Part shown: positions 11,475 through 64,000 of the stretch, one piece after another
Layout of the letters: the number at the start of each line of letters is the position of its first letter
Position numbering within the stretch: position 1 is the stretch's first letter
DNA from: Selaginella moellendorffii
Taxonomy: Eukaryota > Plantae > Lycopodiophyta
DNA: 64,000 nucleotides
Assembly (NCBI RefSeq): GCF_000143415.4
Contig: NW_003314349.1
Span: forward strand, 195,172 to 259,171
Reading direction: 5' to 3'
Made by a program: the position numbers and the translations under genes
Notes under the pieces: generated by a model
The model's database searches: none
Told to the model about the DNA's origin: nothing
Seen by the model: only the letters and a program-made list of their open reading frames with translations

Positions 11475-12290
11475 CTAGAGTCGGAAGGTAACGAGCTCGG
11501 GATCAATGCCGGCGGGTGCCGTGCTGCCCTGGCCTGGATCGTGTGCCAGCTGCTTGGCAATCGCCATAGCGGTGCCCAGGTAATCTTTGTGCTGCTGGAG
11601 TAGTGGGAGTTTGGTCCATTCCTTGTGTAATGTGGCCTTGGCGGTGGTGTTGATGCTGTTCTTCTCCTCGTATTTCCAGTTCCCAGTCTGCCACTCGAAT
11701 TCGTAGAGGGGGAGAAAGCGCTGGCCATAGTCCGCCACGAACTCTATGGCGCACAGCAAGAAATGGAACTCTTCCTTGGAGAGGAAGTATGCGAAGTTCA
11801 AGCGCGTCCATCCAGGTTTGACACCGCTATATCCCTGTGAGAAAAAAAAAAAGGTTCTTTCCTCGTTAGAAAAAGCTCCTTGGCGAAACCTTCTATTGTT
11901 TTGCTTCTCAACCTCTTGAATTGCTGCTCGAAATTTCAGGGAGAGCTCATCACTGACTTTGATAAGCGAGTGGCCTTAAGGACCAGCACACGAGCATCCT
12001 CCTCTCGACTGGATCCCAAACAAATCGTTGAGGAGCTTGGCTACAAACCGGCCTTGCATCACGGTTTGCTGGATTCCACCGTTGGAATCAGTGGTCCGGA
12101 CGAGGAACGAGACGATTGCTGCTCGTTTCACTTGCGTGTTCCCGAGCACCACTATCTTTCGGTTCTTGGACAACCTTTTCAACGCGGTGGTGATGAAGTT
12201 GTGCTCTCTCGACTCGATGAGACGGTATCCCATTTCTTCTTGGACAGTGAAGACAATCCCGGCTTTTATCCGCTAGAGTATGGAAGGTGC
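11475..12290 (-). pseudogene. Class-V PLP enzyme copy A, 5'-truncated (last two exons only)
   Basis: Nearly identical to the 3' half of copies B-E. It has Q>TAG near 12275 and Y>TAA at 11976, and homology stops at about 12290. Confidence 0.85.
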
Positions 12291-12752
12291 AATGATCACC
12301 GCCATGTGGATCTCAGCACTTGATCTGGTCAACTAGCTGCCGAGGGTCTCATATCCAGCACGTCCCGGATGGAGCCTGGCAGGAGTCAAGAGGATTCACA
12401 ATGAGCAGAACTGGCTGCTCACAGTGCGTCCACTCTTTGACACCATCATCTCGTCACCGTATGTTCTCCTTTCCCATATTTAAGTCGCTCGTAGCTCGTC
12501 ACATGGTCCTCCGTGTGTGTGTGTGCATTCATTGTTTTGTGATTCCAATGTGTGATAGGAGATAGTCAAAATGGGAACCAACGACAACAACGTATACATC
12601 TCTCTCCAAAAGTAGTAGTGTCTTATAATTTTACAAAAATTTATGAGCCATTGATTCTTTCCTGGAGTTTAGAGATCATCCACAATGCTGATGCTTCTTG
12701 GAAAAATTAAGATATAAATAAAATAGAAACTCAAGCCCTTGAAAATCATTTT

Positions 12753-12993
12753 CATAACAGGGTCTTTATGAAAATGATTTTCAAGGGCTTGAGTTTCTAT
12801 TTGGAACAACAATTCTTAAACAATATCAAATAGATCTCTCAAGATCTAAATGGTTGAACTTTATAATCCTGTTAAGCATGATTTTGGTTTATTGAGGAAT
12901 TTTTATTACTATCATCAAACTCACTCAGCTCATAGATGGGAAAATTCTGATGTTTAAAATTAATAGTAGGACCTCTAAGAAAATAAATGCTTA
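12753..12993 (+). pseudogene. ABCG last-exon fragment
   Basis: [26 protein letters not shown]. It shares the internal deletion seen in the ABCG pseudogene near 62900; 12753-13778 duplicates about 62865-63875. Confidence 0.8.
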
Positions 12994-13327
12994 AAATTAA
13001 AAGTATGGCTTCGTGAGCTTGTCATTCACGTTTCACTTGTCATATTTATAAATGATCTTCTGGCATCTAGTAAGTGTCACTCAAATTGTCTTCAACCTTC
13101 ACCTAACTTTTGTGTGGGGTGGAGTTCAAATGCAAACTGAGAACTAGAACATAATATGCTTTTGTAAGAAATGCATTTGTAAGCACTTTGATTGCTTCGT
13201 AATTATCTTTTGAGTTAGCCAAATGCCTTAGTCTAATATCTTCCTGTTCAGATCATTAAGAAAATTTTCCTAAAAAGCTATACAGATGAAAATACCTTAA
13301 ACACTGTCAAAGTCCGAATCGATAATT

Positions 13328-13778
13328 CTAAGAAGAATACCATGCTATCTTCCATGGTATTTCCAAAATATAAACTTGAGAGATTAAGAAAAGATTATTA
13401 AACTGCTAAAACACTTTGCTACTTGTCTGATGAATTTGACATGATAAAAGTGCGCCTACATGACAAGCGGATGCTTTGCACAGAAAATCATCAAATAAAT
13501 CAGACATGATAATTACTTCTCTAAACCACTAAGACATGACTGCGTTTGAGTGTCCAAAGCAATGCTCACTCTTCATTTCTTCCCTCCACTCAATCCATGC
13601 AAGAACCACTGTCTCCAAGCCCCATCTCACTGTCAACCATCTCCTCTTTTGGCTGCGTGGTAGGCTGCCTCAAATAAACAGAGTAAGTGATTGTCTCCAG
13701 AACAGTGAGCTTTCCCAGCAAAGCATGCTCTTGATTTACATAAGCATCTGATAGAAAGCTTGAGAATCACTAAATCAA
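13328..13778 (-). pseudogene. Inverted, decayed ABCG relic (exons 3-4)
   Basis: Reverse complement reads [39 protein letters not shown] and matches the ABCG exon-4 end (tatattttgga..ccatggaag). Confidence 0.75.
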
Positions 13779-13846
13779 ATAACTAGCAAGAGGCCAATTC
13801 TTTTCAAACTTTCTAAAGGTTTGTCCCATCCAGTCTTGCCGTGGCT

Positions 13847-15339
13847 ATGGCTTCTCAAGGTACGTCGTCTCCAAATATTCATGTCCTCGCATTTCCCGTC
13901 CCAGGCCAGGGACACATCACTCCGATGATGCATCTCTGTAAAAAGATCGCCGCTCGAGATGGATTCACCGTCTCGTTCGTCAATGTCGACAGCCTCCACG
14001 ACGAGATGATCAAGCACTGGAGAGCTCCACCCAATACGGACCTCCGCCTCGTCTCAATCCCACTCTCCTGGAAGATCCCACACGGCCTGGATGCTTACAC
14101 TCTCACTCACTTGGGTGAGTTCTTCAAGACCACCACCGAGATGATCCCAGCTCTCGAGCATCTCGTCTCCAAACTCTCTCTCGAGATCTCGCCGGTCCGC
14201 TGCATAATCTCGGACTACTTCTTCTTCTGGACCCAGGACGTTGCTGATAAGTTCGGGATTCCAAGGATTGTTCTGTGGCCTGGATCCGCTGCCTGGACCA
14301 CGATTGAGTATCACATACCCGAGCTCATCGCCGGGGGCCATGTCTTTCCCAGCTTGACCGAAGGTAACTCCACTTTCAATGGGATTCACGTACGCCTCAA
14401 AATTTTGCAGCGAAGAAGCTTGTCGCGGATGAATCTGTAGTGGGGATTATCAAGGGACTGGGACCTCTTCATCAAGCCGACATACCTCTCTACTTGCAAG
14501 CTGACGATCATCTCTGGGCGGAGTACTCCGTGCAGCGAGTCCCCTACATCCGCAAGGCCTCCTGCGTGCTCGTCAACTCCTTTTACGATCTGGAGCCGGA
14601 AGCTTCCGACTTCATGGCGGCCGAGCTCCGCAAAGGTGGCACGGAGTTTCTCTCCGTCGGTCCGATGTTTCTCCTGGACGAGCAGACCTCCGAGATCGGA
14701 CCAACCAACGTGGTGCTCAGGAACGAGGACGACGAGTGCCTGCGGTGGCTCGACAAGCAGGAAAAGGCTTCCGTTCTCTACATATCTTTTGGCAGCATTG
14801 CGGTCGTGACTGTCGAACAGTTTGAGGAGATTGCGGTGGGACTGGAAGCAATCGGAAAGCCTTTCCTGTGGGTTTTACGGCCAGAACTTCTCATTGGCAA
14901 TCCGGTAGAGAAGTATAAGGAATTCTGCGAACGTACCTCCAAGAAGGGATTTACTGTGTCCTGGGCACCGCAGCTACGAGTTCTGAAACACCCCTCCATC
15001 GCTGCGCACCTCAGTCACTGCGGCTGGAACTCGGTGCTGGAAAGTATCAGCAATGGAGTGCCCCTCATGTGTTGGCCTTGGGGAGCTGAGCAAAACACCA
15101 ACGCAAAGCTGGTTATACACGACTGGAAGATTGGAGCTGGATTTGCAAGAGGGGCGAATGGACTGATCGGCAGAGGCGACATCGAAAAGACGCTGCGGGA
15201 GGTGATGGATGGGGAAAGAGGGAAGCAGATGAAAGACGCTGTTGAGGTGCTGAAGTGCAAGGCAAGGAAAGCTGTGGAGAGTGATGGTCGATCCGCTGCG
15301 AGCTTGGATGATTTTCTTAAAGGCCTCAGCAGCCAGTGA
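13847..15339 (+). CDS. Family-1 UDP-glycosyltransferase copy 1 (broadly UGT85-like), 2 exons
   Basis: HVLAFPVPGQGHITPM (catalytic His), CIISDY, PSPG box WAPQLRVLKHPSIAAHLSHCGWNSVLESISNGVPLMCWPWGAEQ. A 47-nt GT-AG intron at 14364-14410 joins the two ORFs in frame. Confidence 0.93.
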
Positions 15340-15654
15340 TGCGATGATAAGTTATCACTGCAAGTGCTAGTGTGAGATGGCAAACATGTGAAAAACTTAC
15401 ATGCCATGAATTTGTCAAGCTTGACAAAACATGAAGAGAATAAAATATTCGTCTAGCTTGCAACGCCTTTGTTGACTGGAGAAAACAAGACAGAATCCAC
15501 CGTTGAATAGCGCTGACCACTTGTAAATGCCGTGATGGATCAAACGTGCCAGTGTTTGATCAGGCCACGACGAGGCATGGGCTAGAGCAGTGAAGGCTGA
15601 AAAGGAACAGTAGGAATAGTGCCACTACGTTAAGTGCCTGCTTGTTCTATATGG

Positions 15655-18150
15655 ACATCATGCCATCCTATGTGTTTGCAAAATATCTCAAATCTGCCAT
15701 GTGGCTTGCCTAGGTAAGTCCTAAGAAATGTGGAAGCAACTATAGCAAGGGAGGTTAGGCAATACAAGGTTACCCAACTCGCTTGTTGGCCAAAAAGACT
15801 AATTGGTCGAGCTAAAAAGTGCATAAAAAATCTTGTGTGAGAGAGGAGGATGTAATGTGATTAAAGAGACTTTAAGCCACCATGTTTCCACCAGCCAGCC
15901 ACAAGCCACCCTAGAACTGGGAAGATGGGGGCTCCAAAGCACCAAAAAAGGTGCATTTGCCCCAACATTTGCAGGGAAGAGCCCGAAAACATTATCTTAC
16001 TAATCAGATATGCTTAGGGCCACTATGTTACTGCCAATAGACCATGAGCCTCTCTTTTCTATTCTAGAATTTTCCCTCAATCTCTCTCAATCCTCTCATT
16101 AGAACACTTTGAAAATATGACTCCTCAAGAACACTTTTAAAATTAAGATTATTGTCTTAGGGCCACTATATTGCTAAAGAAATCTCACAGCTTACAAGTG
16201 GCAACATGGTGGCCCTAAGTTTGTGTGTGAGCATTTCATGGCTGACTAGAAAACACTCTCCATTCTAAGATCTACCAGAACATTATTAAACACTTTTAAA
16301 TGTGACGTCTAACCTATTACTATCACCATCCTCCTCATTATATCCCTAAAATTGGATTGCAAGTCTTCAAGTGAAGATATTAGGCACCTAAATCACAAAA
16401 GAATATCCTAATAGATCTCCTTTCCTTACTTTAGTGCCAAATGATTAAAACACGCTATTGACTATAGATAGTAAAACTATATTATCTTGCCACCACTTAG
16501 GATGTAATGCTAATTGCATCCTCACCAAAATCTTACTCAATTTATAAATTCCACTATAATTGACAAATATAAAATTTTCTGTCTTGAAAGTTGCTATTCT
16601 GGCATCACTTTGCTTCCTTTAGCTATTCTCTTTTATTAAACTTATAAATTCCTTTTCTCCTTGCATCCCAAAAATCTTTGCATCCAAGGAAATTATTTTC
16701 TTTTTGTTACAACATCTTTTTCATCTCAAGCTTAACCACTTGGGATCTCCTTTCAACTTCTTGTCTATTCATTACCACTTTTGGCTCTTTATATCTGTCT
16801 ACTCCTAATGTTCAAATATTTTTTTTCTTTAGCTTTGGAATTTTCATAACTCCTTTGTGACTTGTAATTTCTATAGTCACTATTGCTTTTCCACCCACTT
16901 ATCTCCTCAACAATCAACCCTTCATTATTGAAATCTCAAAAGCTTGTCTAGACTCATTCCACTTTATCCCCTTTTCCAAAAGCTTTTGCACTCATCTTTG
17001 TCATATCTACTTCTATTCTACACTCCTTTGTAGAGAATGGTTCTTTTCTATCTTCTTATTTATACTGTAAAAGATATATTATGATTCCTCATTTTTTCAC
17101 GAAAAGGGTATACCTTATTTCTTTACCCATCTTTTGACTAAGGCATCTTATATGATACCACTATCCATATACCATATATTTCTTATGTCCTCAAGAAATC
17201 TCTACTCACTTCTTTTAAAGAAAATCTTGATAAAATCCTGTTCATGACCTTTGATGCTCCTAGAATTGAACTCTTACCTACTATTCTTACAAATACGTTC
17301 TTTTGAGAATCTTCCTGAACCAACTCACTACTCTCTAGATTAGAGAATAGTAATATCTTCCAAACTCTTCCACTATATCCATATGTGTAGGATGTAAAAC
17401 TCTTCTCCTCTGATATTAAGGCAAACCTAACAATTAAATTTGCCCATATGTTTGCTGAATATCTCAAATCTTCCACATGGCTTGTCTAGGCAAGTCCCTC
17501 CAAGAAATGCAAAAGTGGCAATAAAAGGGGAGGCCAAGCAAATCCAAGGCACTCATTGCTAAAAAAACCAACTAATCAAGCTAGGAGTGCTAATTCTTTA
17601 TTGCATTGCATAGAACGAATATTGCATCTAATTTTTTCACTATCATACACACTTGTAGGAAAGAGCTTAAAAACACCCTCTTGCTACTCAAATATGCTTA
17701 AAGCCACTATGTTACTGCCAGCAGACTATGAGCCTCTCTTTCCTATTCTAGAATTCTCCCTCAATCTCTTTCAATCCTTTCAAGAGAACACTTCGAAGAT
17801 ATGATTCCTTAAGAACACTTTTAGAATCAAGATTACTATCCCAAGGCCATTGTGTTGCCATTAGCTAGCTCATACATAAGCTTATAGCCATTATGTTATT
17901 ATTCACTGGTTGTGATATCTCTTTGGAAAACACTCTCTATTCTAAGTTTTACAAGAACATTATTAAACATTTTAAATGCTTTTGGAAAGGGGTGAGGCCT
18001 AGTCTAACCCTTTTTGGAGTCATCCTCCTTTCTAAATCCCTAAAACCTGATTGTAAATCTTTATTTACACTTTGTTTTGTAGTGAAGATTTTGGCACCCA
18101 AATCACAAAAGAATATCCTAATGGATCTCCTCTCTTTGCCTTAGTGCCAT
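15655..18150. mobile_element. Decayed repetitive element, probably a retroelement remnant, with an internal direct repeat (about 15660-16440 vs 17440-18150)
   Basis: Two diverged copies of about 700 bp, no intact ORF. It interrupts the + strand PLP-enzyme relic. Confidence 0.4.
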
Positions 18151-18182
18151 TTCAACTGTTTCTAGTTTGGACAATATTAGAG

Positions 18183-18850
18183 TGTAAATAACCAAAGGGA
18201 ATAACTCGAAAGATGAATTATAGAGGTTCAAATATAGAAGGAAAGGGCCCATAAACAAAAGTGCATCCCCTTTTTCAATCGGTTAAAAATTTTAGGATAA
18301 TTGGGGTTAAATATCTTTAGGTTTGAATAATATTGGGCCAGGAAGTCCAAATTTAGGAGCTTACATTTGGTATCAAAAAAGTCTTGGGTTCAACTTTATT
18401 GGTTTGCTAAGGGAATCACACCATATATTGATTGATATTTGGTAAGTTTAGTTTGCTCTCGGCTAAGCTTGACTTGAGGGGTAGGGTGTCAAGAGAGCAA
18501 GGCTCTTGTGAGAGTTGTAGCTCTTAGCTTTCGTTCATGAGGGCGTGAATTTGTAGGGAAACGTGGTGGATTGTAAGCAACCAAAGAAAACGTTTCGAGA
18601 GACGATCCATAGGGGTTCAAATATAGAGGGAAAAAGCCCATGAACAAGAGTGCACACTATAGTGGATTGTAAGCAACCAAAAGGAACGACTCGAGAGACA
18701 ATCCATAGGGGTTTAAATATAGAGCGAAAGGGCCCATAAATAAAAGTGCACCCTCTTTTTTAATCAGTTAAGGGTCTTGGGATAATTCTTTGGGTTTGAA
18801 TAATACTAGGCTGGGTGACCTCCTGGGAAGTCCAAATGCAGGAGCTTACA
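18183..18850 (+). mobile_element. Cassandra-type TRIM (5S-rRNA-containing LTRs), complete
   Basis: LTR1 TGT..ACA at 18183-18365, then PBS tggtatca (tRNA-iMet) and a short internal region. LTR2 at 18668-18850 has a partial duplicate from 18572. 5S C-box-like tactaggctgggtgacctcctgggaagtcc. TSD TAGAG on both sides. Confidence 0.88.
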
Positions 18851-19044
18851 TAGAGCTGTGAAAAAACTCCATGAACATTTAGGCTTGTATGTACCACCCC
18901 AAATGAGAAACTCAACCATGGTAGCAATCAATAATAAGAAAAGATGGCTAATGTTCATAATAAACATCACTCCAACATTCTTCCCTAAGGCAAAGTCTTA
19001 TTGAGGTTTCTTTTAATCTGTCAACTATTTAAACTAGAAGTTAT

Positions 19045-19470
19045 TCTGACTAATTATGGATTGATTGATATGAAGTACCTCAAGCGCACATACCTTTTTT
19101 TGCTTGTAGTGTGTAACAGGAGTTTCAGTGGACTCTTGCATTCTACACAAACACGAAGCATTAGCATGCTTTGATTTTGCAAGCTAGTAAGATGAGATCA
19201 GAATAAAAGAAGCTTACTTGTTGAATTTGATCAACAATAGTCTACATTAAGATTGACATGCGACCCTTGTAATGTTGAGTCCACACAAGTATGTTGAAGG
19301 GCTAGGAAAGTTTAGTGTGCTTTGCATAAACAAAAAGCTTTACAAGCTCAAGGATCACACATTGTCAACAACAAGTGGAGGAGTAGTAAACTTTGTCAAC
19401 TATAATAAAGAGGTAAGTGCGAAAGGAAAAGAAAACCAACTCTACAAACTCATACTAAGGCAGGGGATGG
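19045..19470 (+). pseudogene. Decayed + strand relic of the class-V PLP enzyme (exons 3-4)
   Basis: GLIDMKYL and MLSPHKYVEG..NKKLYKLKDHTLSTTSGGVVNFVNYNKE, with indels. Confidence 0.8.
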
Positions 19471-27049: not shown

Positions 27050-27976
27050 TAAGGAAGTGGTTGTAAGCCACAAATTTTTCCTTTCTAATTCACCAGCTTA
27101 CTTCGTGTATTTGACCACCACTACTTTAGCCTTAATTAAGTTTCTTTACCAAGGTTCTTGCTTATTGTACCAACTCCTACTTGGTTTAAACAACTCACTA
27201 CATGAGCAACAAAGCATTAATCATCCATCCATGGATTCTCAAATTTTCTCTCAATCCCCCTCTTTAGGTTAAACTGAACTTAAAGTTCAGTTATGCTCCC
27301 TGCAAGTACAAACAGCCAAGCACACCAAATCTCTAAATTCCTAACATCTTTTGGTATAACAAAATTTGATTATGAAACTCTCTAAATCCCAAGCCTTGGG
27401 TGCATTACTTGCTTTGGGACACTAGGGGGAAACACCATAGCCTAACAGCTCAATATAAGTACACTTACTCCCCCACTTCCATCTTGAAGGGAAGGCCCAA
27501 GCCTCTGGGAAGGAGTGAGGACCAATGAGTCACAAGGTACTCAAATGGGGCACCACTCTACATGAGTCGGAAGCACTATAGTTTATTTCCCTTCTGGAAG
27601 TGAAAATTGCTCTTAAGCACTTTTCAAGTGGCTTTTTTGGCACCACCTAACTCAATGTCTAAAGCCCTTAACCCCCAAACTTAACTTTAAGTCAATTTGA
27701 AAGCACCATTAAAGAGTTTCTTTAAGATTAGTTCCTAAGCCTCACTATTCCTACTGTACTTTTGAAGCCCCCCCCACAAGAGACACATGCTTTGGGCTTT
27801 CACCCTATGATTTGTATTAGTATTTAGACTTAGTTTTGGACTCCGTCTCAAACTCAATCTTAGACCTAATCTTGAATGTCAAACTCAATCTCGAACTTGG
27901 TCTTGGACTTGGTCTTGAATTCGGTCTCGGAGTCAGTATTAGAGTTAATCTCGAACTCAGTCTCAGAGTCAGTCTT
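27050..27976 (-). mobile_element. LTR-retroelement remnant (PPT near 27767-27776, decayed hexamer repeats 27830-27976)
   Basis: - strand gggtgaaagcccaaagcatgtgtctcttgtggggggggg resembles the PPT at 32230-32277. It abuts a truncated ABCG. Confidence 0.5.
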
Positions 27977-46638: not shown

Positions 46639-49105
46639 ATGAGAAAGGAGAACAGATATATTATTATGGATGTCGCATGGAAGGATTTGAGTGTGAGCGC
46701 GAGAAATGGACGAGTGTTGCTGGAGACTATGTGTGGCTATGCCCAGAGCGGCCAAATCACGGCGATCATGGGTCCTTCGGGATCCGGAAAGTCCACCTTG
46801 CTCGATGCGCTTGCTGGTATAGTTTTCCAAGATTGATTTGGGTTGGGCAATAGATTAAAGCTCGAGATTCTTGCATTGTCGTTCATCACAGGTAGATTGG
46901 CCAAGAACGCGAGGCGAGAAGGATCCATTTTTGTGAATGGGAATCTCCAGACGAACATGAGGCATGGGACTGCGGTGTGTATATAAACATTTGATTCTGT
47001 GATTCTCAAACTTTCTGTCATAGGCCTATGTGAAACAAGAAGATGTTTTGCTAGGAACACTCACTGTCTTAGAGACAATCACTTACTCTGCTCAATTGAG
47101 GCTGCCTCACTCACTGCCGCAAAGCCAAAAGATGGAGATGGTTGAGAGTGTGATCACTGAGATGGGGCTTGGAGATTGCAAGCATACAGTGGTGGGAGGT
47201 TGGTTCTCGCATGGATTGAGCGGAGGGGAGAAACGAAGAGTGAGCATTGCTTTGGAGATTCTAACTCAGCCATCTCTTTTGTTCATGGACGAACCAACCA
47301 GTGGTTTAGACAGGTGAATATTTATATGATTTTTAAGTCCGGTTTATTGTAATTTTTATTTGATGTTTTCTTTGCAGTGCATCTGCGTTTTATGTGATTA
47401 AAACAATTAAGAACCTAGCTACTTCAAAACGCACTGTTATTATGTCAATTCACCAGCCAAGCAGCGAAGTGTTTGAGCAGTTTGATAATCTTTGCCTACT
47501 ATCTCAGGGAGCACTTGTATATTTTGGAGATGCCATGGAAGCTAGCACGGTACTTTTCTCAAATTTGATATTCTTTATGTTTTATATTTTATTTTAGTTC
47601 TTCGAGAGTGCTGGATTTCCTTGTCCTCTCCGAAGAAATCCATCAGACCACTATCTTAGAGTTATTAATTCTGATTTTGACAATGTTCAAAACAAGTTTA
47701 AGGTATTAATTTGTACTATTTTCTGGAGATTTTTTTTCTTAATATTCATCTCAATTTGAACAGGAAGATATTGAAACTCAAGAAAAAGTTCCAGCTTCTG
47801 AAGCAATCAAAGTGCTTACAAATGCATTTCAGAATTTGCATTTGAGATCCCTCCACACAAAAGTTGACATTCTTTGTGTGACTAAGGTGAACCTTCTAGA
47901 CAGTTTGTGTGACACACCTGGTGCAAAGGTAAATGACTTGAATTTTTAAAACATTATGATTATTAATGGATTACTATTTATAGAATGAATGCATCCAGAT
48001 GCCTCAAGCAGGAGTTCTCCATCAGCTTTCCACGTTAACTAAAAGATCATTTATAAATATGACAAGAGATATTGGATACTATTGGCTGAGAATCTTTGTG
48101 TACTTTATGCTTAGCATCGTTATTGGCAGTATATATTTTAATGTTGGCACTAAATACAACTCCATTGCAGTAAGAGAATACCAAAAAATATTCCTAACCA
48201 TGGTTAAGCTCGTTTGTTTTTTTTAAGGCAAGGATTGGCTGTATGGCTTTTATTGGTAAATTTCTTACATTTATGTCAATTGGAGGTTTTCCATCTTTCA
48301 TTGAAGAGATTAAGGTATGGGATAGTTCTGAATTGTCTTGTTTTCATATCCAGTGATATTTTCTTCAGGTTTTTAATCATGAGAAACAAAATGGTTACTA
48401 TGGTCCCATTGTGTTTACTCTCACAAACACACTCTCTTCCATTCCTTATCTCCTTCTTATTTCATTGATATCAACAAGTGTATTTTATAATATGGTTAAA
48501 CTCCACCCAGGCTTTGATCACTTCATATTTTTTATGTTGAACTTATTTGCATCTGTGACCATCGTGGAGAGCTTGATGATGTGTGTAGCATCAATTGTTC
48601 CCAATTTTCTCATGGGAATAATTACAGGATCTGGAATCTTGGTAAATCTCTTTATATTTCTTAAACCGTTTCTAATGTGATTTTTCAGGGGTTATTCATG
48701 CTTGTTGACGGATTTTTTAAACTTGCTAATGAACTGCCAAAAGGCTTTTGGAAATATCCAATGCATTATATAGCATTTCAAACATATTTACTTCAGGTAA
48801 AACAAATATTATTTATTTTCTTGAAATTAAAAAAACTATAATAGGGTCTTTATGAAAATGATTTTCAAGGGCTTGAGTTTGATAATAATGATATATCTGA
48901 AGGAAAGCTATCAGGAACAACAATTCTTAAACAGTATCAAGTAGATCTCTCAAGATCTAAATGGTTGAACTTTATAATCCTGTTAAGCATGATTTTGGTT
49001 TATCGAGCAATTTTTATTACTATCATCAAACTCACTCAGCTCATAGATGGGAAAACTCTGATGTTTAAAATTAATAGTAAGACCTTTAAGAAAATAAATG
49101 CTTAA
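46639..49105 (+). CDS. ABCG half-transporter copy 2
   Basis: Same exon structure and motifs as copy 1; frame appears intact. Confidence 0.88.
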
Positions 49106-49389: not shown

Positions 49390-49810
49390 CACAGAAAATA
49401 ATCAAATAAATCAGACATAATAATTACTTCTCTAAACCACTAAAAGATGACTGCGTTTGGGTGTCCAAAGCAATGCTCAGTCTTCATTTCTTCCCTCTAC
49501 TCAATCCATGCGAGAACCACTGTCTCCAAGCCCCATCTCACTGTCAACCATCTCCTCTTTTGGCTGCGTGGTAGGCTGCCTCAAATAAGCAGAGTAAGTG
49601 ATTGTCTCCAGAACAGTGAGCTTTTCCAGCAAAACATGCTCTTGATTTACATAAGCATCTGATAGAAAGCTTCAGAATCACTAAATCAAATGTTTATACA
49701 CACCGCAGTTCCATGCCTCATGTTTGTCTGGAAATTCCCATTGGATCCTTCTCGCCTACCTATGATGAACGACAATGCAAGAATCTTAGTCTCAAACACA
49801 TGATCAATCT
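49390..49810 (-). pseudogene. Inverted, decayed ABCG relic (exons 2-3)
   Basis: Reverse complement matches ABCG intron 1, exon 2, intron 2 and exon 3. Confidence 0.75.
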
Positions 49811-49964
49811 TTAGAAAACTCTATCAGAATGCACGTCGAGCAAGGTTTGACTTTCCCGAGCCTGGCTGGACCCTGATCTCAAGATTTAAAAGTCGACAAA
49901 ACTAGCAAGAGGCCAATTCTTTTCAAACTTTCTAAAGGTTTGTCCCATCCAGTCTTGCCGTGCT

Positions 49965-51472
49965 ATGGCTTCTCAAGGTACGTCGTCTCCAAAGATCCAT
50001 GTCCTCGCATTTCCCGTCCCAGGCCAGGGACACATCACTCCGATGATGCATCTCTGTAAAAAGATCGCCGCTCGAGATGGATTCACCGTCTCGTTCGTCA
50101 ATGTCGACAGCCTCCACGACGAGATGATCAAGCACTGGAGAGCTCCACCCAATACGGACCTCCGCCTCGTCTCAATCCCACTCTCCTGGAAGATCCCACA
50201 CGGCCTGGATGCTCACACTCTCACTCACTTGGGTGAGTTCTTCAAGACCACCACCGAGATGATCCCAGCTCTCGAGCATCTCGTCTCCAAACTCTCTCTC
50301 GAGATCTCGCCGGTCCGCTGCATCATCTCGGATTACTTCTTCTTCTGGACCCAGGACGTTGCTGATAAGTTCGGGATTCCAAGGATTGTTCTGTGGCCTG
50401 GATCCACTGCCTGGACCACGATTGAGTATCACATACCCGAGCTCATCGCCGGAGGCCATGTCTTTCCCAGCTTGACCGAAGGTAACTCCAATTTAAGTTT
50501 AAGTTCTGCCAATGGCAGTCACGTACGCCTCGAAACTTTGCAGCGAAGAAGCTTGTCGCGGATGAATCTGTAGTGGGCATTATCAAGGGACTGGGACCTC
50601 TTCATCAAGCCGACGTACCTCTTTACTTGCAAGCTGACGATCATCTCTGGGCGGAGTACTCCGTGCAGCGAGTCCCCTACATCCGCAAGGCCTCCTGCGT
50701 GCTCGTCAACTCCTTTTACGATCTGGAGCCGGAAGCTTCCGACTTCATGGCCGCCGAGCTCCGGAAAGGTGGCACGGAGTTTCTCTCTGTCGGTCCCATG
50801 TTTCTCCTGGACGAGCAGACCTCCGAGATCGGACCAACCAACGTGGTGCTCAGGAACGAGGACGGCGAGTGCCTGCGGTGGCTCGACAAGCAGGAAAAGG
50901 CTTCCGTTCTCTACATATCTTTTGGCAGCATCGCGGTCGTGACTGTCGAACAGTTTGAGGAGCTTGCGGTGGGACTGGAAGCAATCGGAAAGCCTTTCTT
51001 GTGGGTGTTACGGCCAGAACTTCTCATTGGAAATCCGGTAGAGAAGTATAAGGAATTCTGCGAACGTACCTCCAAGCAGGGATTTACTGTGTCCTGGGCA
51101 CCGCAGCTACGAGTTCTGAAACACCCCTCCATCGCTGCGCACCTCAGTCACTGCGGCTGGAACTCGGTGCTGGAAAGTATCAGCAATGGAGTGCCTCTCA
51201 TGTGTTGGCCTTGGGGAGCTGAGCAAAACACCAACGCAAAGCTGGTTATACACGACTGGAAGATTGGAGCTGGATTTGCAAGTGGGGCGAATGGACTGAT
51301 CGGCAGAGGCGACATCGAAAAGACGCTGCGGGAGGTGATGGATGGGGAAAGAGGGAAGCAGATGAAAGACACTGTTGAGGTGCTGAAGTGCAAGGCAAGG
51401 AAAGCTGTGGAGAGTGGTGGTCGATCCGCTGCGAGCTTGGATGATTTTCTTAAAGGCCTCAGCAGCCAGTGA
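49965..51472 (+). CDS. Family-1 UDP-glycosyltransferase copy 2, 2 exons
   Basis: Near-identical to copy 1. Intron 50482-50543; PSPG box ends in EQ. Confidence 0.93.
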
Positions 51473-51769
51473 TGCAATGATAAGTTATCACTGCAAGTGC
51501 TAGCGTGAGATGGCAAACATGTGAAAAACTTACATGCCGCGAATTTGTCAAGCTTGACAAACCATGAAGCGAATAAAATATTCGTCTACCTTGCAACCCC
51601 TTTGTTGACTGGAAAAAACAGGACCGAAATCCACCGTTGAATAGCACTGATCTCTTTCTCATCACATGTAAATGCCATGATCGATCGCGCCGTGTTTGAT
51701 CAGCCACGACAGAGCAGGATTCTTAGTGAAGGCTGAAAAGGAGCAGCAGGAATAGTGCCACAGCATTAA

Positions 51770-52445
51770 GGATAGGCTCCCAGCGTAGCAGGCTTCTCAT
51801 TGCTTCTCATTACACTGCCTCTTCCTTGTTCTCTATAGAAAACTTCCTCATCAAGCACGTCGCCCTATGGTGAGTAATCTCTTCTGCATATCCTGGAATT
51901 CTGTTTCAGGGAACACGCATGCCGAGGACAGCTACGTCGGAGAGAAGACCACCCGGATGGTGAAACTGGCCACGAGTTATGTCAAGGAGTCCCTTGGAGG
52001 AACCAAGGACGATGCTCTCTTCTTCTGCGACTCTGGAACCACTGCAGCTGTGAAAAAGCTCCACGAACTTTTGGGCTTGTCGGTGCCACCCCAAATGAGA
52101 GACTCATCCGTGGCATCGATGACAGGTGTTCATAACCACCCGTGTCCCCCGTGTCGAGCAGACCTCCGCCGAGCTGTGTGTCTGCTCGTGAGGGGTTTCG
52201 GCGGTGTGTGCCGTTTGTAACGAACATCATCTTCCCCGAGGCAAAGTCTTGCTGACAATCTGTCAACTGTTTAAACTACAGGTTATTCTGACCGATGATG
52301 GATTGATCGACATGAAGCACCTCGCTGCATGCACGCCGTCCAAAGCTAACGGGGGATACCAGCCATCGCTCGCCTTCTACACAAACATGGAGCAGTATAG
52401 CATGCTTTGATTTGGCAAGCTGGTAAGACGAGATCAGAACGAAAA
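51770..52445 (+). pseudogene. Decayed + strand relic of the class-V PLP enzyme (exons 1-3)
   Basis: IENFLIKHV, GNTHAEDSYVGEKTTRMVKLATSYVKESLGG, DGLIDMK, with indels and filler. Confidence 0.85.
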
Positions 52446-52449
52446 GTGA

Positions 52450-55400: not shown

Positions 55401-57290
55401 TTTTAAACAAAACCCTTATCTAATATCTTTAAGTTTATTCTAGCTCTTTAAAGATCAAAGTGTGTCTCCAAGATTGATGCATTTGCCTAACAACAAGTTC
55501 TATAACTCTCTATTCCATGTTTATAGCATGAAGCCTCTCAACTGCTTTGTCTGGCAAAAACTCAATTAACACATAAGGTGATTTATATATTCCAAACATA
55601 GGCAAAAATTGAGTTACAACTCTTATTCTAATAATTGTATAATTTTGCCTATATGCAAAATATTGACTATCTAGGAATTATCTTTTGTAAGGATGTTTAC
55701 GTCTCACAAAGGGTGGTTCACACCTTGCAAAAGGTGTTTCATGCCTAAAGTGATGAGTATTTCCTTTAACAATTTAGTTTGCTTAACTAGTTTGAAAAAT
55801 GAATTTTCATGTCTATTCACTTGTATATTTGTTCTTTGTCTATACCTCATTTTAGAGGATATAGGGCATATTTCATGTGATTGCCCTTGATTTCTCCTTA
55901 TGGGGCTAGATGTTATGTGAATGCTCTCAGAATCTATAGGAGAGTGATAACTTTCACACTAAACAGTGTTTGCAAGCTCTCTTTATATAATAGATAAGCT
56001 TTGATTAATTCATTTAAGTGTACTAAACATAAAGTGGTTTGAACGGTTATAGTGGTTCATGATAACTATTTCCAAATTTTCAATTTTATGAGTCTTGTTT
56101 GAGTCTTATAAGCTCTTGTAATATGCATAGAAGAAAACTGTATATGAGTAGTAGTTAATGCTAAAGGACTTTGGATCAAAGTCTTGAGACAACACAATGT
56201 TTTAATTATAATTTTGCTTCTATTAAAGCCTCATAAGATTTGGGTGAATAGTTCCTCAATTTATTCTTCACTAAGACTGACTTTAACTTTCTTTAAACTA
56301 GAGTCAAAAACAAAAGTTATAAGTGCCTAATTTTCCTATTTATGTATGCCTAGAAAAATTGTGACACGCTACTAAAAAAAGTGTCTTTTAAAAACCCAAG
56401 TGAGAATTTGCTTAGAAGGAAAGAATTCTAGAGTAGTTGATTGTGTCTTCCATATCAAACAAACTCCATTCCTTTTTTTTTTTGGATTTTTCTCAAGAAA
56501 TTGTCGGTAAAACAATTTAAACTTGAGTTTTTTAGTAATGTATGTTGTACTTCAATTTTAAACTCGTCCTATGCTCTATAACTTTAGTGATAGTTGAAAA
56601 ACTATATTTCTTATGTTGTTTAGGCACTAAGCCACTACAATTACTAGAAGACATTTTTCGTTCATTGTTGTTTAGGCTTAAGGCCTTTAGAATCATTGAA
56701 GTGATCTACTTGTGAATCCTAATGCTTGACATGTTTGGAATTCACAAGGAATTTTCTCTCAGTTGTTTTTCAAGCTAAAGAGTGATGGCTTATCCTACCA
56801 TAGTTGTTAAAAGTGAGTAAGGCTTTTTCTACTTGTACTCATGTTCTTGCCCATGCCTGCAAAATAGTGACAAAAAACATAGATAAGAATGTAAAAGAAA
56901 AAGAGAGAAGAAAATAGAAAATAATAGAACTCAGCCTCAAACCCCAAAGGCGTGAGTAATAATAAGTATATGTTATTTTTTAACTTTACTTTGTACAAAC
57001 AATCATAAGTGGGAGAAAAAATGGTTAATTCAATGCAAATGCATACAATAGTGAGCGAGGGTTATTTTTTAGCACGTCTAAGTGTTATTTATATACTACA
57101 TGATTTTATAACTGTTTTTAACTATTTCATGTTTGTCTATGACAAGCATTGCTTAAGTCAAGTTTTCTTTTTTGGATACTTAAGCTTAGGCATAATTTCA
57201 TTTCATCTAAGCTTCTTTCTTCTGCTCTATTTGGGAAGATATACAAAATAAAACATTTACCTCTTCATCAAACATTGCCAAAGTCTGAAT
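52450..57290. mobile_element. About 4.8-kb AT-rich degenerate insertion, unclassified (possibly Helitron-like)
   Basis: Interrupts the array at both ends and has no long ORF. Only weak helicase-like words on the - strand (AIAGIA near 53260). Confidence 0.3.
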
Positions 57291-57296
57291 TAATAA

Positions 57297-57865
57297 TTCT
57301 AAGAAGAATACCATGCTATCTTCCATGGTATTTCCAAAATATACAAGTCACTTTGCTTGAGAGGTTAAGCAAAGATTATTAAACTGCTAAAACATTGATA
57401 AAAGTGCACCTAGATCTAATCACATATCAAGCCACAGAAAATCATCAAATAAATCAGACATAATAATTACTTCTCTAAACCACTAAAAGATGACTGTGTT
57501 TGGGTGTCCAAAGCAATGCTCAGTCTTCATTTCTTCCCTTCACTCAATCCATGCGAGAACCACTATCTCCAAGCCCCATCTCACTGTCAACCATCTCCTC
57601 TTTTGGCTGCGTGGTAGGCTGCCTCAAATAAGCAGAGTAAGTGATTGTCTCCAGAACAGTGAGCTTTCCCAGCAAAACATGCTCTTGATTTACATAAGCA
57701 TCTGATAGAAAGCTTCAGAATCACTAAATCAAATGTTTATACACACAGCAGTCCCATGCCTCATGTTTGTCTGGAAATTCCCATTGGATCCTTCTCGCCC
57801 CACAATCTACCTGTGATGAACGACAATGCAAGAATCTTAGTCTCAAACACGTGCTCAATCTTTAG
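57297..57865 (-). pseudogene. Inverted, decayed ABCG relic (exons 2-4)
   Basis: Same relic as 13328, 49390 and 63435. Confidence 0.75.
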
Positions 57866-57995
57866 AGAGTCTTGCGAAGTCACTGAAAGACTCGTTGACT
57901 TTGGAGATGGGTTGCGTAAAGTATATATATCCCAACACAAACTTTTGTTTGAATTGATGCGAAACGAATGTACTAGTACATAGCGCTCAAGAACC

Positions 57996-60062
57996 CTAGA
58001 ATCGGAAGGTAACGAGCTCGGGATCAATGCCGGCGGGCGCCGTGCTGCTCTGTCCTGGATCGTGAGCCAGTTGCTTGGCAATCGCCATAGCGGTACCCAG
58101 GTAATCTTTATGCTGCTGGAGCAGTGGGAGTTTGGTCCATTCCTTGTGTAATGTGGCCTTGGCGGTGGTGTTGATGCTGTTCTTCTCCTCGTATTTCCAG
58201 TTCCCAGTCTGCCACTCGAACTCGTAGAGGGGGAGAAAGCGCTGGCCATAGTCCGCCACGAACTCTATGGCGCACAGCAAGAAATGGAACTCTTCCTTGG
58301 AGAGGAAGTATGCGAAGTTCAAGCGCGTCCATCCAGGTTTGACACCGCTATATCCCTGTGAGAAAAAAAAAAAGTTCTTTCCTCGTTAGCAAAAGCTCCT
58401 TGGCGAAACCTTCTATTGTTTTGCTTCTCAACCTCTTGAATTGCTGCTCGAAATTTCAGGGAGAGCTCATCACTGACTTTGAGAAGCGAGTGGCCGTAAG
58501 GACCGGCACACGAGCACCCTCCTCTCGACTGGATCCCAAACAAATCGTTGAGGAGCTTGGCTACAAACCGGCCTTGCAGCACGGTTTGCTGGATTCCACC
58601 GTTGGAATCAGTGGTCCGGACGACGAACGAGACGATCGCTGCTCGTTTCACTTGCTTGTTCCCGAGCACCACTATCTTTCGGTTCTTGGACAACCTTTTC
58701 AACGCGGTGGTGATGAAGATGTGCTCTCTCGACTCGATGAGACGGTATCCCATTTCTTCTTGGACAGTGAAGACAATCCCGGCTTTTATCCGCTGGAGTA
58801 TGGAAGGTGTTCCAGCGTCTTCTCGGCTTTCAATGTCCTCCAGGTAGAGTGTGTCCTGGTATGAGTTTGTTTAGTGTTGGTTTTCTTTTTTCTTTCGCTG
58901 GAAAGGGAACTGACCTCTTTGTTGTAGTTGACGAAGTCTACCACTCCTCCGCCTGTTGTCGACGGTGCGTGATCCTTGAGCTTGTAGAGCTTTTTGTTCA
59001 TGCAAAGCAGGCCCGGCGTTCCTGGCCCTCCGACATACTTGTGTGGACTCAGCATCACAGCATCGTATCCATCAGCTTTTCGCGATCGCATGTTGATCTT
59101 CACATATGGACCACTGTTGATCAGATTCGGCAAGTAAGCTTCGTTTCGTCCTTGGTAAAAGATCTCGTCTTACCAGCTGGCGAAATCAAAACATGCTAAT
59201 GCTCCATGTTTGTGTAGAAGGCGAGCGATGGCTCTAGTGTCCGCTAAAACTCCCGTGACATTACTGCAAGCGGAGAAGGAGCCAAGCATTGGACGATCTG
59301 CGTGCTTGGGATTTTGCAGCTCCTCTTCGAGGTACTTCATGTCAATCAATCCATCCTCGGTCATTGGAACTTGAATAACCTGTGGTTTAAACAGTTGACA
59401 GATTGAAAGAAACGAAAAAGCCCAACCTCGGCAAGACTTTGCCTCCAGGGAAGAAGGTTGGAATGATGCTCGTATGGGCCTATGAACACCAGCCATCTCT
59501 TCCAGTCATCGATCGCTGCCACGGCTGACTCTCTCATCTGGGGCGGTACAGACAAGCCCAAAAGCTCGTGGAGCTTTTTCACAGCTGCAGTGGTTCCAGA
59601 GGCGCAGAAGAAGAGAGCATCATCCTCGGTTCCTCCCAGGGACTCCTTGACATAACTCGTGGCCAGTTTCACCATCCGGGTGGTCTTCTCTCCGACGTAG
59701 CTGTCCTCGGCATGCGTGTTCCCTGAAACAGAATGCAGCGGGTCCAGATATGCAGAAGAGGATTCACGGCTTTACTCACCGTAGGACGGCATGACGTGCT
59801 TGATGAGGAAGTTTTCTATATAGAACAAGCAGCGGCCAGAGGCAGTGTAATCGGCATAAGTGAGAGGCCTGCTGCCGAATGGTGTGGAGATTTGGAGCTG
59901 GGAGCCGATGATCTGGGATCTGAGCCAGACACACTTTTGCTCATCGTCAAAGGGCCTGAAGAACTTGAAAGGATTGGGCTTGAAGTCTGGCTGCCAATCC
60001 TCCTCGATGCTGGGAGTTACCTCGCCGACCTTGGAAGCCGACTTTGGAGCAAAGCACCTCAT
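57996..60062 (-). CDS. Class-V PLP cysteine-desulfurase-like enzyme, copy E
   Basis: Six exons, motifs intact (CASGTT variant). Only about 615 bp from the divergent ABCG start. Confidence 0.87.
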
Positions 60063-60676
60063 CGTCTTGCTGGTGAGCCTCTCTTACTTTGCTTGTAATA
60101 CGTTCGCTACTGTAAGACATCGTTTGCAAACTTACCTTGTTCTTAACACTCCAGCTCCTCTTCAGCCATCACAAATATCCTGTTTTAGTGCACCGCGTGA
60201 GGAAAATGTCTTCACAGATGCCCAATGGATTTCTGTCCTATTTTTCCAGATCACTTTAGGAGAAACATGGTCAAGGAAACGACATGTTTTGTCAACCTTG
60301 GCAAATTCTAAGCACCCGTCGCCTTAGTGGAGAGGTACGTCGGCGTGATTATGAAGTCCTAGTCTTTTGTTGACAAGCTTCTTCCTTGCAGAGCATTGAG
60401 GCGTGACATGGAAGAATTTAATTACCTTTCGAAAAGACAAGATATGTCCAGAGAGCGGTCCTTGGAATGCCAAAGTTCCTGAGAAGAAGACACTCGAGAG
60501 TTTGGAGAATTTCGAGAGTTTGGATAGACTTTGAATGGGAAAGTCAAGTCAACACAAGAAAGAAAGTAAACAATATTTTACACTATTAATCTCCTACGAA
60601 TCGAAGATCTTACCGTGTTACAATAGCTGAAAGTCCAAGTCTAACTTGGAGAGCTATAAATCTTACCCAAGTGTTC

Positions 60677-63105
60677 ATGAGAAAGAAGAATTGATATATT
60701 ATTATGGATGTGGCATGGAAGGATTTGAGTGTGAGCGCGAGCAATGGACGAGTGTTGCTGGAGAGTATGTCCGGCTATGCCCAGAGCGGCCAAATCACCG
60801 CGATCATGGGTCCTTCGGGATCCGGAAAGTCCACCTTGCTCGATGCGCTTGCTGGTATAGTTTTCCAAGATTGATTTGGGTGCAATAGATTAAAGCTCGA
60901 GATTCTTGCATTGTCGTTCATCACAGGTAGATTGGCCAAGAATGCGAGGCGAGAAGGATCCATTTTTGTGTGACCAAAGGATCATCCATTGCGGCAACGT
61001 GATTGCTCAGCTACACGAAAGTAATAACACCGTCAGAACATCATACCAGAATGGGAATCTCCAGACGAACATGAGGCATGGGTCTGTGGTGTGTATATAA
61101 ACATTTGATTCTGTGATTCTCAAACTTTCTGTCATAGGCCTATGTGAAACAAGAGGATGTTTTGCTGGGAACACTCACTGTTTTGGAAACAATCACTTAC
61201 TCTGCTAACTTACTCGCTGCCGCGAAGCCAAAAGATGGAGATAGTTGAGAGTGTGATCACTGAGATGGGGCTTGGAGATTGCAAGCATACAGTGGTGGGA
61301 GGTTGGTTCTCGTGTGGATTGAGCGGAGGGGAGAAACGAAGAGTGAGCATTGCTTTGGAGATTCTAACACAGCCATCTCTTTTATTCATGGACGAACCAA
61401 CCAGTGGTTTAGACAGGTGATATTTATATGATTTTTAAGTCCGGCTTATCGTAATTTTTATTTGATGTTCTTCTTTGCAGTGCATCCGTTATTATGTCAA
61501 TTCACCAGCCAAGTAGCGAAGTGTTTGAGCAGTTTGATAATCTTTGCCTACTATCTCAGGGTGCACTGGTATATTTTGGAGTTGCCATGGAAGCTAGCAT
61601 GGTACTTTTCTCAAATTTAATATTCTTTATGGTTTATATTTTATTTTAGTTTTTCGACAGTGCTGGATTTCCTTGTCCTCTCCGAAGAAATCCATCAGAC
61701 CACTATCTTAGAGTTATTAATTCCGATTTTGACAATGTTCAAAACAAGTTTAAGGTATTCATTTGTACTTTTTCTTAGAGTGTTTTTCTTAATATTCATC
61801 TCAATTTGAACAGGAAGATATTGAAACTCAAGAAATAGTTCCAGCTTCTGAAGCAATCAAAGTGCTTACAAATGCATTTCAAAATTTGCATTTGAGATCC
61901 CTCCACACAAAAGTTGACATTCTTTGTGTGACTAAGGTGAACCTTCTAAACAGTTTGTGAGACACACCTAAATGACTTGATTTTTTAGAATATTATGATT
62001 ATTAATGGATTACTATTTATAGAATGAATGATCCAGATGCAGGAGTTCTCCATCAGCTTTCCACGTTAACTAGAAGATCATTTATAATTATGACAAGAGA
62101 TATTGGATACTATCGGCTGAGAATCTTTGTATACTTTATGCTTAGCATCGTTATTGGCAGTATATATTTTAATGTTGGCACTAAATACAACTCCATTGCA
62201 GTAAGAGAATACCAAAAAATATTCCTAACCATGGTTAAGCTCGTTTGTTTTTTTTTTAAGGCAAGGATTGGCTGTATGGCTTTTATTGGTAAATTTCTTA
62301 CATTTATGTCAATTGGAGGTTTTCCATCTTTCATTGAAGAGATTAAGGTATAGGATAGTTCTCAATTGTCTTGCTTTCATATCCAGTGATATTTTCTTCA
62401 GGTTTTTAATCATGAGAAACAAAATGGTTACTATGGTCTCATTGTGTTTACTCTCTCAAACACACTTTCTTCCATTCCTTATATCCTTCATATTTCATTG
62501 ATATAAACAAGTGTATTTTATAATATGGTTAAACTCCACCCAGGCTTTGATCACTTCATTTTTTTTTGTGTTGAAATTATTTGCAACTGTGACTGTGGTG
62601 GAGAGCTTGATGATGTGTGTAGGATCAATTGTTCCCAATTTTCTCATGGGAATAATTACAGGATCTGGAATCTTGGTAAAATCTCTTTATATTTCTTAAA
62701 CTGTTTCTAATGCGATTTTTCAGGGGTTATTCATGCTTGTTGACGGATTTTTTAAACTTGCTAATGAACTGCCAAAAGGCTTTTGGAAATATCCAATGCA
62801 TTATATAGCATTTCAAACATATTTATTTCAGGTTAAACAAATATTATTTATTTTCCAAAAAATTATAACAGGGTCTTTATGAAAATGATTTTCAAGGGCT
62901 TGAGTTTCTATCTGGAACAACAATTCTTAAACAATATCAAATAGATCTCTCAAGATCTAAATGGTTGAACTTTATAATCCTGTTAAGCATGATTTTGGTT
63001 TATCGAGGAATTTTTATTACTATCATCAAACTCACTCAGCTCATAGATGGGAAAATTCTGATGTTTAAAATTAATAGTAGGACCTCTAAGAAAATAAATG
63101 CTTAA
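60677..63105 (+). pseudogene. ABCG copy 3, pseudogene
   Basis: TGA at codon 6, 79-nt insertion at 60971-61049, frameshifting deletion near 61207, deletion near 61488, TAA near 62504, and deletion in the last exon. Confidence 0.85.
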
Positions 63106-63434
63106 AATTAAAAGTATGGCTTCGTGAGCTTGTCATTCACGTTTCACTTGTCATATTTATAAATGATCTTCTGGCATCTAGTAAGTGTCACCCAAATTGT
63201 CTTCAACCTTCACCTAACTTTTGTGTGGGGTGGAGTTCAAATGCAAACTGAGAACTAGAACATAATATGCTTTTGTAAGAAATGCATTTGTAAGCACTTT
63301 GATTGCTTCGTAATTATCTTTTGAGTTAGCCAAATGCCTTAGTCTAATATCTTCCTGTTCAGATCATTAAGAAAAATTTCCTAAAAAGCTATACAGATGA
63401 AAATACCTTAAACACTGTCAAAGTCCAAGTCGAT

Positions 63435-64000
63435 AATTCTAAGAAGAATACCATGCTATCTTCCATGGTATTTCCAAAATATACACTTGAGAGATTAAGA
63501 AAAGATTATTAAACTGCTAAAACACTTTGCTACTTGTCTGATGAATTTGACATGATAAAAGTGCGCCTACATTTGCACAGAAAATCATCAAATAAATCAG
63601 ACATAATAATTACTTCTCTAAACCACTAAGACATGACTGCGTTTGAGTGTCCAAAGCAATGCTCACTCTTCATTTCTTCCCTCCACTCAATCCATGCGAG
63701 AACCACTGTCTCCAAGCCCCATCTCACTGTCAACCATCTCCTCTTTTGGCTGCGTGGTAGGCTGCCTCAAATAAGCAGAGTAAGTGATTGTCTCCAGAAC
63801 AGTGAGCTTTCCCAGCAAAGCATGCTCTTGATTTACATAAGCATCTGATAGAAAGCTTGAGAATCACTAAATCAAATGTTTATACACACCGCAGTTCCAT
63901 GCCTCATGTTTGTCTGGAAATTCCCATTGGATCCTTCTCGCGTACCTGTGATGAACGACAATGCAAGAATCTTAGTCTCAAACACATGATCAATCTTTAG
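63435..64000 (-). pseudogene. Inverted, decayed ABCG relic (exons 2-4)
   Basis: Same relic that precedes both UGTs. Confidence 0.75.

Follow-up and report, generated by a model that had tools for sequence, protein, structure and literature searches.

Several described systems offer comparisons for a 64,000-nucleotide stretch of the Selaginella moellendorffii genome (GL377653.1:195172-259171; here called the window, the numbering of which is used below unless stated otherwise), in which genes for a class-V pyridoxal phosphate (PLP) enzyme, a half-size ABCG transporter, and a family-1 UDP-glycosyltransferase (UGT) recur together. The core steps of glucosinolate synthesis are carried out by the C-S lyase SUR1 and then by the S-glucosyltransferase UGT74B1; SUR1, a lyase with the class I/II aminotransferase fold, has no catalytic cysteine, and the Arabidopsis genes are not clustered. 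AT1G24100 is given as a glucosinolate gene in the same work as the working definition of plantiSMASH, which takes a cluster to hold at least three enzyme subclasses, duplicates being counted once (PMC5570173). In the dhurrin cluster of sorghum, CYP79A1, CYP71E1, UGT85B1, the SbMATE2 transporter, and a GST lie together, and both their co-expression and their shared product have been demonstrated (PMC5107947). The group II cysteine desulfurases SufS, CsdA, and CpNifS are the enzymes to which the PLP protein can be compared (classification in PMC8931425).

The Selaginella locus resembles the dhurrin cluster in that a family-1 UGT and a transporter adjoin enzyme genes, but its transporter is an ABCG and not a MATE protein, the number of its enzyme types is only two, and assignment of its UGT to UGT85 is not established. 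After duplicates are collapsed, the window contains two enzyme types (class-V PLP and UGT) and a transporter, short of the plantiSMASH definition. As with SUR1 and UGT74B1, a PLP enzyme for a cysteine-derived sulfur compound would be followed by a UGT; in contrast to SUR1, however, the Selaginella enzyme belongs to class V and has a SufS-type lysine and a catalytic cysteine. We consider it rather likely that the locus arose by block amplification of a chance or old neighborhood, in which the dosage of PLP and/or UGT was selected for while the ABCG copies decayed as passengers. Functional coupling of the three genes is unproven and somewhat disfavored.

Whole blocks with three gene types were duplicated in tandem

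Self-comparison of the window with blastn revealed blocks of 1 to 5 kb repeated at 93 to 98% identity, far beyond chance, with introns, noncoding spacers, and pseudogene relics included. The copies share their noncoding flanks, have the same orientation, and are graded in divergence, as in a tandem segmental duplication array. Since whole blocks were duplicated, the three gene types recur by descent from a single ancestral adjacency, and the recurrences do not count as separate pieces of evidence for their coupling. The composition of the units varies along the array, from PLP-ABCG to PLP alone, PLP-ABCG-UGT, and a deleted unit. Arrays known to arise by segmental duplication and unequal crossing-over likewise consist of same-orientation multigene blocks with similar spacers and varied units, in which intact copies, truncated copies, and pseudogenes are intermixed. 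The Selaginella array differs from them in having three unrelated genes per unit in place of one family, and in that most copies of two of the three gene types are intact and under purifying selection.

Spliced models were built by hand on the clearest unit, and their exons were then projected onto every copy. The PLP gene, on the minus strand, has 6 exons and encodes 588 residues. The ABCG gene, on the plus strand, has 11 GT-AG exons and encodes 621 residues in ABCG_2 and 617 in ABCG_1, and the UGT gene has 2 exons for 481 residues. The models of UGT_1 and UGT_2 agree at every residue with RefSeq XP_024518014.1 and XP_024518050.1, respectively. Pfam assigned Aminotran_5 to the PLP protein, ABC_tran and ABC2_membrane to ABCG, and UDPGT to UGT. 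The window contains 4 intact PLP genes, 2 intact and 1 broken ABCG genes, 2 intact family-1 UGT genes, and fragments of these, as follows.

11301 to 11345, minus strand: UGT N-terminus fragment of 15 codons at the left border of the array (tblastn, 100% identity to residues 3 to 17 of UGT_2)
11474 to 12289, minus strand: PLP_A, a 3' PLP fragment with part of exon 5 and exon 6, annotated as the 232-residue SELMODRAFT_427096 (RNA contigs extend into exon 5 of intact copies)
12754 to 12991, plus strand: ABCG last-exon fragment (self-comparison and tblastn)
13169 to 13745, minus strand: old inverted ABCG relic in the spacer 5' of UGT_1 (tblastn, residues 88 to 298, 35 to 63% identity)
13847 to 15339, plus strand: UGT_1, intact, 481 residues, exons 13847 to 14363 and 14411 to 15339 (identical to XP_024518014.1; intron removed in RNA contigs)
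18855 to 19412, plus strand: strongly diverged PLP-like relic (tblastn, residues 141 to 328, 41% identity)
27962 to 28332, plus strand: ABCG fragment (3' end) where the youngest repeat begins (self-comparison)
28904 to 30960, minus strand: PLP_B, intact SufS-like class-V PLP enzyme, 588 residues (projected model)
34256 to 36698, plus strand: ABCG_1, intact half-size ABCG, 617 residues (projected model)
37261 to 39326, minus strand: PLP_C, intact, 588 residues (projected model)
42297 to 44355, minus strand: PLP_D, intact, 588 residues, the reference model, with Lys287 and Cys442/Cys444 (spliced by hand)
46639 to 49105, plus strand: ABCG_2, intact, 621 residues, 11 GT-AG exons, with Walker A, signature, Walker B, and H-loop (spliced by hand, Pfam)
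49445 to 49760, minus strand: old inverted ABCG relic 5' of UGT_2 (sequence comparison)
49965 to 51472, plus strand: UGT_2, intact, 481 residues, exons 49965 to 50481 and 50544 to 51472 (identical to XP_024518050.1)
51772 to 52397, plus strand: old inverted PLP relic just 3' of UGT_2 (self-comparison)
57271 to 57797, minus strand: spacer copy with an inverted ABCG relic, adjoining the 3' end of PLP_E (self-comparison)
57996 to 60062, minus strand: PLP_E, intact, 588 residues (projected model)
60677 to 63105, plus strand: ABCG_3, a pseudogene with a stop at codon 6, deletions in exons 2 to 4, and frameshifts in exons 7, 9, and 11 (projected model)
63280 to 64000, minus strand: spacer with an inverted ABCG relic preceding UGT_3 (sequence comparison)

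An earlier reading of the window from its letters and open reading frames (ORFs), here called the original prediction, had given coordinates and counts of 4 intact PLP, 2 ABCG, and 2 UGT genes, which the spliced models reproduced on all copies. The gene families that it named agree with the Pfam matches, and the tandem amplification that it described is borne out by the self-comparison of blocks. It also had the array begin at 11475, close to the left border at approximately 11.3 kb, which is preceded by unrelated genes. Its expectation of another UGT beyond the window was correct as well, as UGT_3 starts 137 bp past the end (window-equivalent position 64137).

The array continues for approximately 70 kb past the window with UGT_3, PLP_F, ABCG_4, UGT_4, and then the more diverged UGT_5. 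This further stretch was covered apart from approximately 30 kb, and the total on GL377653.1 is at least 125 kb. A sister scaffold, GL377607.1, holds at least 2 further units at 93 to 97% identity, and is the other haplotype of this region or, alternatively, an array paralogous to it.

The first unit in the window is derived from a PLP-ABCG-UGT unit by an internal deletion, and in it the PLP 3' fragment is joined to the ABCG last-exon fragment. The short UGT piece at 11301 to 11345 is inverted and adjoins the truncated PLP_A. The youngest duplication, of 5.4 kb, relates 27976 to 33346 with 36335 to 41706 at 98.4% identity. Sub-repeats of 1.07 kb and 0.6 kb are found within this repeat, in the region upstream of the PLP gene.

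The PLP and ABCG genes are arranged head to head with 0.6 to 3.3 kb between their start codons, and the UGT lies approximately 0.86 kb 3' of ABCG. The two shortest PLP-ABCG intergenic regions, of 614 bp (window 60062 to 60677) and 591 bp (locus record L001, 6104 to 6696), belong to units with a broken ABCG; units with 1.8 to 3.3 kb between the PLP and ABCG start codons have an intact one.

Each of the seven UGT copies examined is preceded by an inverted relic of the ABCG 5' part, at most approximately 250 bp upstream. An inverted PLP relic follows the UGT within 200 to 330 bp in five of the seven, and at UGT_5 this relic spans residues 69 to 572. Thus, the UGT occupies the place of the promoter once shared by an older, inverted pair of PLP and ABCG genes, and the sequence comparisons indicate that PLP and ABCG were adjacent before the present amplification. 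Sites with the order relic-UGT-relic are located at 49445 to 52397 in the window and, in other locus records, at L006 9463 to 12433, L008 9224 to 13315, L001 9512 to 12301, and L005 9462 to 12081.

The ancestral arrangement would thus have comprised PLP and ABCG head to head with UGT downstream of ABCG, and would have been copied repeatedly as whole blocks, most likely through unequal crossing-over between the repeated spacers.

PLP and UGT copies are retained more often than ABCG copies

Seven full-length copies of each type were sampled over both scaffolds. All seven PLP copies and six of the seven UGT copies are intact, compared with four of the seven ABCG copies. Pairwise ratios of nonsynonymous to synonymous divergence (dN/dS) ranged from 0.14 to 0.38 for PLP, 0.18 to 0.34 for UGT, and, in informative pairs, 0.17 to 0.29 for ABCG, with P < 0.01 by Fisher's test in most pairs. 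Synonymous divergence (dS) was 0.005 to 0.085, and intron distances were 0.003 to 0.05, except for the single 47-nt UGT intron (0.11). All three types have therefore been under purifying selection since duplication, and ABCG copies were lost more often. Because PLP and UGT copies were kept in such proportions relative to ABCG, the amplification is best read as a probable gain in the dosage of PLP and/or UGT, with ABCG largely hitchhiking. We infer that the three functions are independent of one another.

The PLP protein is a distant relative of SufS

The original prediction had pointed to an SPHK lysine and an RGGCSCA loop in the PLP enzyme, and both are found in all copies; Lys287 and Cys444 are conserved in all five intact copies on GL377653.1, four of which are in the window. 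PF00266 matches on exons 3 and 5 identify a class-V aminotransferase fold. A phmmer search of solved structures with a 283-residue piece of the protein gave no match; a family profile later found SufS as its best hit (8D8S, E = 1e-39). In this alignment, the segment 'lsphkflGGPG' is paired with 'FSGHKMLGPTG' and 'RgGCsCaGPY' with 'RAGHHCAQPL', so that the lysine that binds PLP and the catalytic cysteine both coincide with those of SufS, the SufS cysteine being aligned with the second cysteine of RGGCSCA. The loop RxGCxCAGPY is kept in every PLP homologue that was aligned.

In common with SufS, CsdA, and CpNifS (PDB 8D8S, 5XT5, 1JF9, and 4Q75), the protein has the class-V fold, an EHH(S/A)N motif, a PLP lysine (in SPHK here and SGHK there), and a short loop with the catalytic cysteine (RGGCSCA here and RAGHHCA there). 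Three features set it apart from them: the cysteine of the loop is accompanied by another invariant one (C-x-C), extra residues are inserted behind the loop, and the C terminus bears a tail of approximately 85 residues. With TIGR01979, the cutoff of which is 475 bits, full-length homologues scored 84.6 to 125 bits and the piece from the window 29.5 bits, below the family cutoff. By these alignments and scores the PLP protein is a separate family, distantly related to the SufS type (group II), and is not SufS proper.

The protein looks functional by itself. As the SufS lysine and catalytic cysteine are kept, it is predicted to act as a cysteine desulfurase and not as a C-S lyase of conjugates. 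The alignment points to formation of a persulfide on its own cysteine from free cysteine or selenocysteine, and not to lysis of a cysteine conjugate to a free thiol. The glucosinolate-like C-S cleavage to a thiol, proposed in the original prediction, is thus not what the SufS-type alignment predicts. We know of no SufE- or SufU-type partner for the Selaginella enzyme.

Members of the family are spread over bacteria, archaea, fungi (a chytrid), cnidarians (a sea anemone), and plants. Among 8,000 candidates scored, 7,988 matched at E < 1e-30; most are named 'uncharacterized' or 'probable cysteine desulfurase', and thousands are from angiosperms. Protein-atlas searches returned generic names only. 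Literature searches for the PLP family, the locus tags, or Selaginella gene clusters found nothing relevant and no characterized member of the family.

The ABCG and UGT proteins appear functional

ABCG_1, ABCG_2, and ABCG_4 have a nucleotide-binding domain before the transmembrane domain, with ABC_tran and ABC2_membrane matches and with intact Walker A, signature, Walker B, and H-loop motifs. This is the domain order and the full set of ATPase motifs of half-size ABCG (WBC) transporters, and the best matches among solved structures are AtABCG25, AtABCG16, and human ABCG2. The protein looks functional and is predicted to be a catalytically complete half-size exporter; this does not extend to ABCG_3, which is a pseudogene. 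The nearest named relative of the membrane exon is 'ABCG11', at 61% identity over a single 146-residue fragment, which provides a lead only. Arabidopsis ABCG11 exports cuticle lipids.

The UGT matches PF00201 (E = 4.6e-24). UGT_1 to UGT_5 have the PSPG box, with HCGWNS at residue 375 and WGAEQ at residue 396, and four of these five have the N-terminal catalytic histidine motif PGQGH at residue 19. On these motifs the protein looks like a functional, ordinary family-1 glycosyltransferase. Its nearest paralogues are 53 to 56% identical. Seed-plant UGTs reach at most 42% identity, and for this reason the automatic NCBI name 'UGT85A2' does not denote orthology.

PLP and UGT are transcribed and spliced

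Contigs from four transcriptome runs, each of a different study, were aligned at 92% likeness to the first unit (window 11300 to 15700). This 4.4-kb unit contains 3' sequence of each of the three gene types, and as contigs only were used, no expression levels can be compared. Spacers and introns were uncovered, so the runs represent RNA. PLP exons 5 and 6 were covered in all four runs, with contigs that continue into exon 5 of the intact genes. The UGT was covered over both exons, again in 4/4 runs; its intron was spliced at the canonical GT..AG ends in X1, X2, and X4, and one long UGT contig in X6 retains it. Hence, PLP and UGT are transcribed and spliced. Several sites of the RNA contigs show a mixture of variants, in keeping with the expression of several copies.

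The ABCG last-exon fragment, which is 95.7% identical to ABCG_2, had zero cover in all four runs, so that ABCG copies resembling ABCG_2 were not detected, although holes in cover prove nothing. Comparison of ABCG exon 9 with spliced S. moellendorffii fragments gave none above 70% identity; the filter excluded full-length products, and this result is silent on expression. PLP and UGT contig depths were roughly parallel over the four runs, an observation that we rejected as evidence (n = 4, unnormalized, and depth unfit for gene ranking).

No linkage of the three genes in four other plants

By annotation and tblastn, no ABCG or UGT was found within 10 kb of a PLP homologue in Riccia, Acorus, Nelumbo, and Cornus. 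The PLP gene is in tandem by itself in Riccia (two copies) and Nelumbo (three copies). The three-gene linkage looks specific to Selaginella.

Possible functional coupling of the three genes

Several observations weigh against block amplification of a mere neighborhood. Purifying selection was retained on all three gene types after duplication, and all three come from families typical of specialized metabolism. The PLP-ABCG adjacency survived at least two duplication rounds, as witnessed by the old inverted relics that flank the UGTs. A cytochrome P450 and a DHAR-like GST follow UGT_5 at the array end (record position approximately 330 to 338 kb). PLP and UGT were detected together in every transcriptome examined, and the lack of ABCG contigs is a weak negative, obtained for the last exon only, with contigs only, and in four runs. 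Finally, the linkage comparison covers four land plants more distant than other Selaginella species or other lycophytes.

The original prediction had proposed a make-glycosylate-export module; nothing testable supports this proposal, several results lean against it, and it is not refuted. As a true functional module, the SufS-like PLP enzyme would mobilize sulfur or selenium into a small molecule or cleave a cysteine conjugate, UGT would glucosylate the product, ABCG would export it, and the genes would have been amplified for flux. Two enzyme types and an exporter, all under purifying selection, do lie within 10 kb of each other, with PLP and ABCG head to head at a short distance. Their adjacency has outlasted the older inverted duplication, the presence of both PLP and UGT transcripts in each of the four runs is favorable, and there is a precedent in sorghum, where a UGT and its transporter share the dhurrin cluster (PMC5107947). 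The co-recurrence, however, is accounted for by duplication of whole blocks, spacers and relics included. ABCG, the putative exporter, decays, and was not detected in the transcriptomes (0/4 runs for its 3' end), which leans against a module, as does the absence of the linkage from the four other plants. Two enzyme types fall short of the plantiSMASH definition, a SufS-type cysteine predicts a protein-bound persulfide and not a free thiol, and the literature searches brought up neither a cluster of this kind nor a study of the PLP family. We therefore regard a functional three-gene module as unlikely. When the two-gene variant described below is included, a PLP-UGT(-ABCG) module of some kind is a tentative possibility.

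A more specific form would be a lycophyte-specific metabolic module, in which a small molecule gains or loses sulfur or selenium through the SufS-like C-x-C PLP enzyme, UGT glucosylates it, and ABCG may export it. We hold this to be quite unlikely; if true, it would give a first function to the PLP family, and a sulfur-handling gene cluster would for the first time be known from outside the seed plants.

Alternatively, PLP and UGT might act as a pair in one process, such as the detoxification of xenobiotics or of compounds of sulfur or selenium, next to an unrelated ABCG11-like neighbor. This would agree with the detection of PLP and UGT but not ABCG in 4/4 runs, with the retention of PLP and UGT copies and the loss of ABCG copies, and with the name of the closest named relative of the ABCG membrane exon. 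Yet four unnormalized contig sets cannot establish co-regulation, UGT_5 has no intact PLP gene within 10 kb, and the ABCG11 name comes from one 146-residue fragment, so that a two-gene pair appears distinctly improbable. If coupling of PLP and UGT proves true, the locus would be a rare gene cluster of a non-seed plant.

That collapsed or misjoined haplotypes of a heterozygous, two-haplotype assembly mimic tandem copies is very improbable, for although at 98.4% identity the youngest repeat is diverged about as much as the two haplotypes of this assembly, the copies are 1.5 to 8% apart in synonymous sites and differ further in private indels and in their disabling lesions, unit structures differ along the array, the second scaffold has a diverged array of its own, and the RNA contigs show the variant mixture of several expressed copies.

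With block amplification as the preferred reading, the array is one more tandem neighborhood in an array-rich genome, and it cautions against taking co-duplication as evidence for a pathway. The PLP enzyme may nevertheless be worth a bench test: its family is very large and has the full SufS catalytic set, no characterized member was found, and Selaginella holds at least seven intact copies.

Flanking genes, spacers, and opposite-strand transcripts

The first 11 kb of the window contain unrelated genes, namely, a DUF1645-like ORF, a zf-HIT DEAD-box helicase, and a gene for 853 residues. The helicase (4364 to 5923) is a single ORF of 519 residues with DEAD (1.5e-44), Helicase_C (1.3e-19), and N-terminal zf-HIT (1.5e-08) domains. 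No long ORFs or strong tandem repeats were found in the AT-rich spacers at 15.6 to 27.9 kb and 52.4 to 57.2 kb. At the far end of the array, the P450 genes and the DHAR-like GST, which has CLIC-like_N/GST_N domains, are located at 15136 to 18474 of locus record L008, corresponding to approximately 334.5 to 337.8 kb of GL377653.1. P450 genes are also found 3' of a UGT on the sister scaffold GL377607.1 (locus record L005, 13007 to 21509).

Contigs of X1 and X6 have joints at 11812 to 11937, 11575 to 11676, 14434 to 14486, and 14864 to 14936 with GT..AG ends on the strand opposite to PLP and UGT. One contig of 1,501 nt retains the sense UGT intron yet skips 51 nt with antisense splice ends. These opposite-strand joints may represent spliced natural antisense RNAs.

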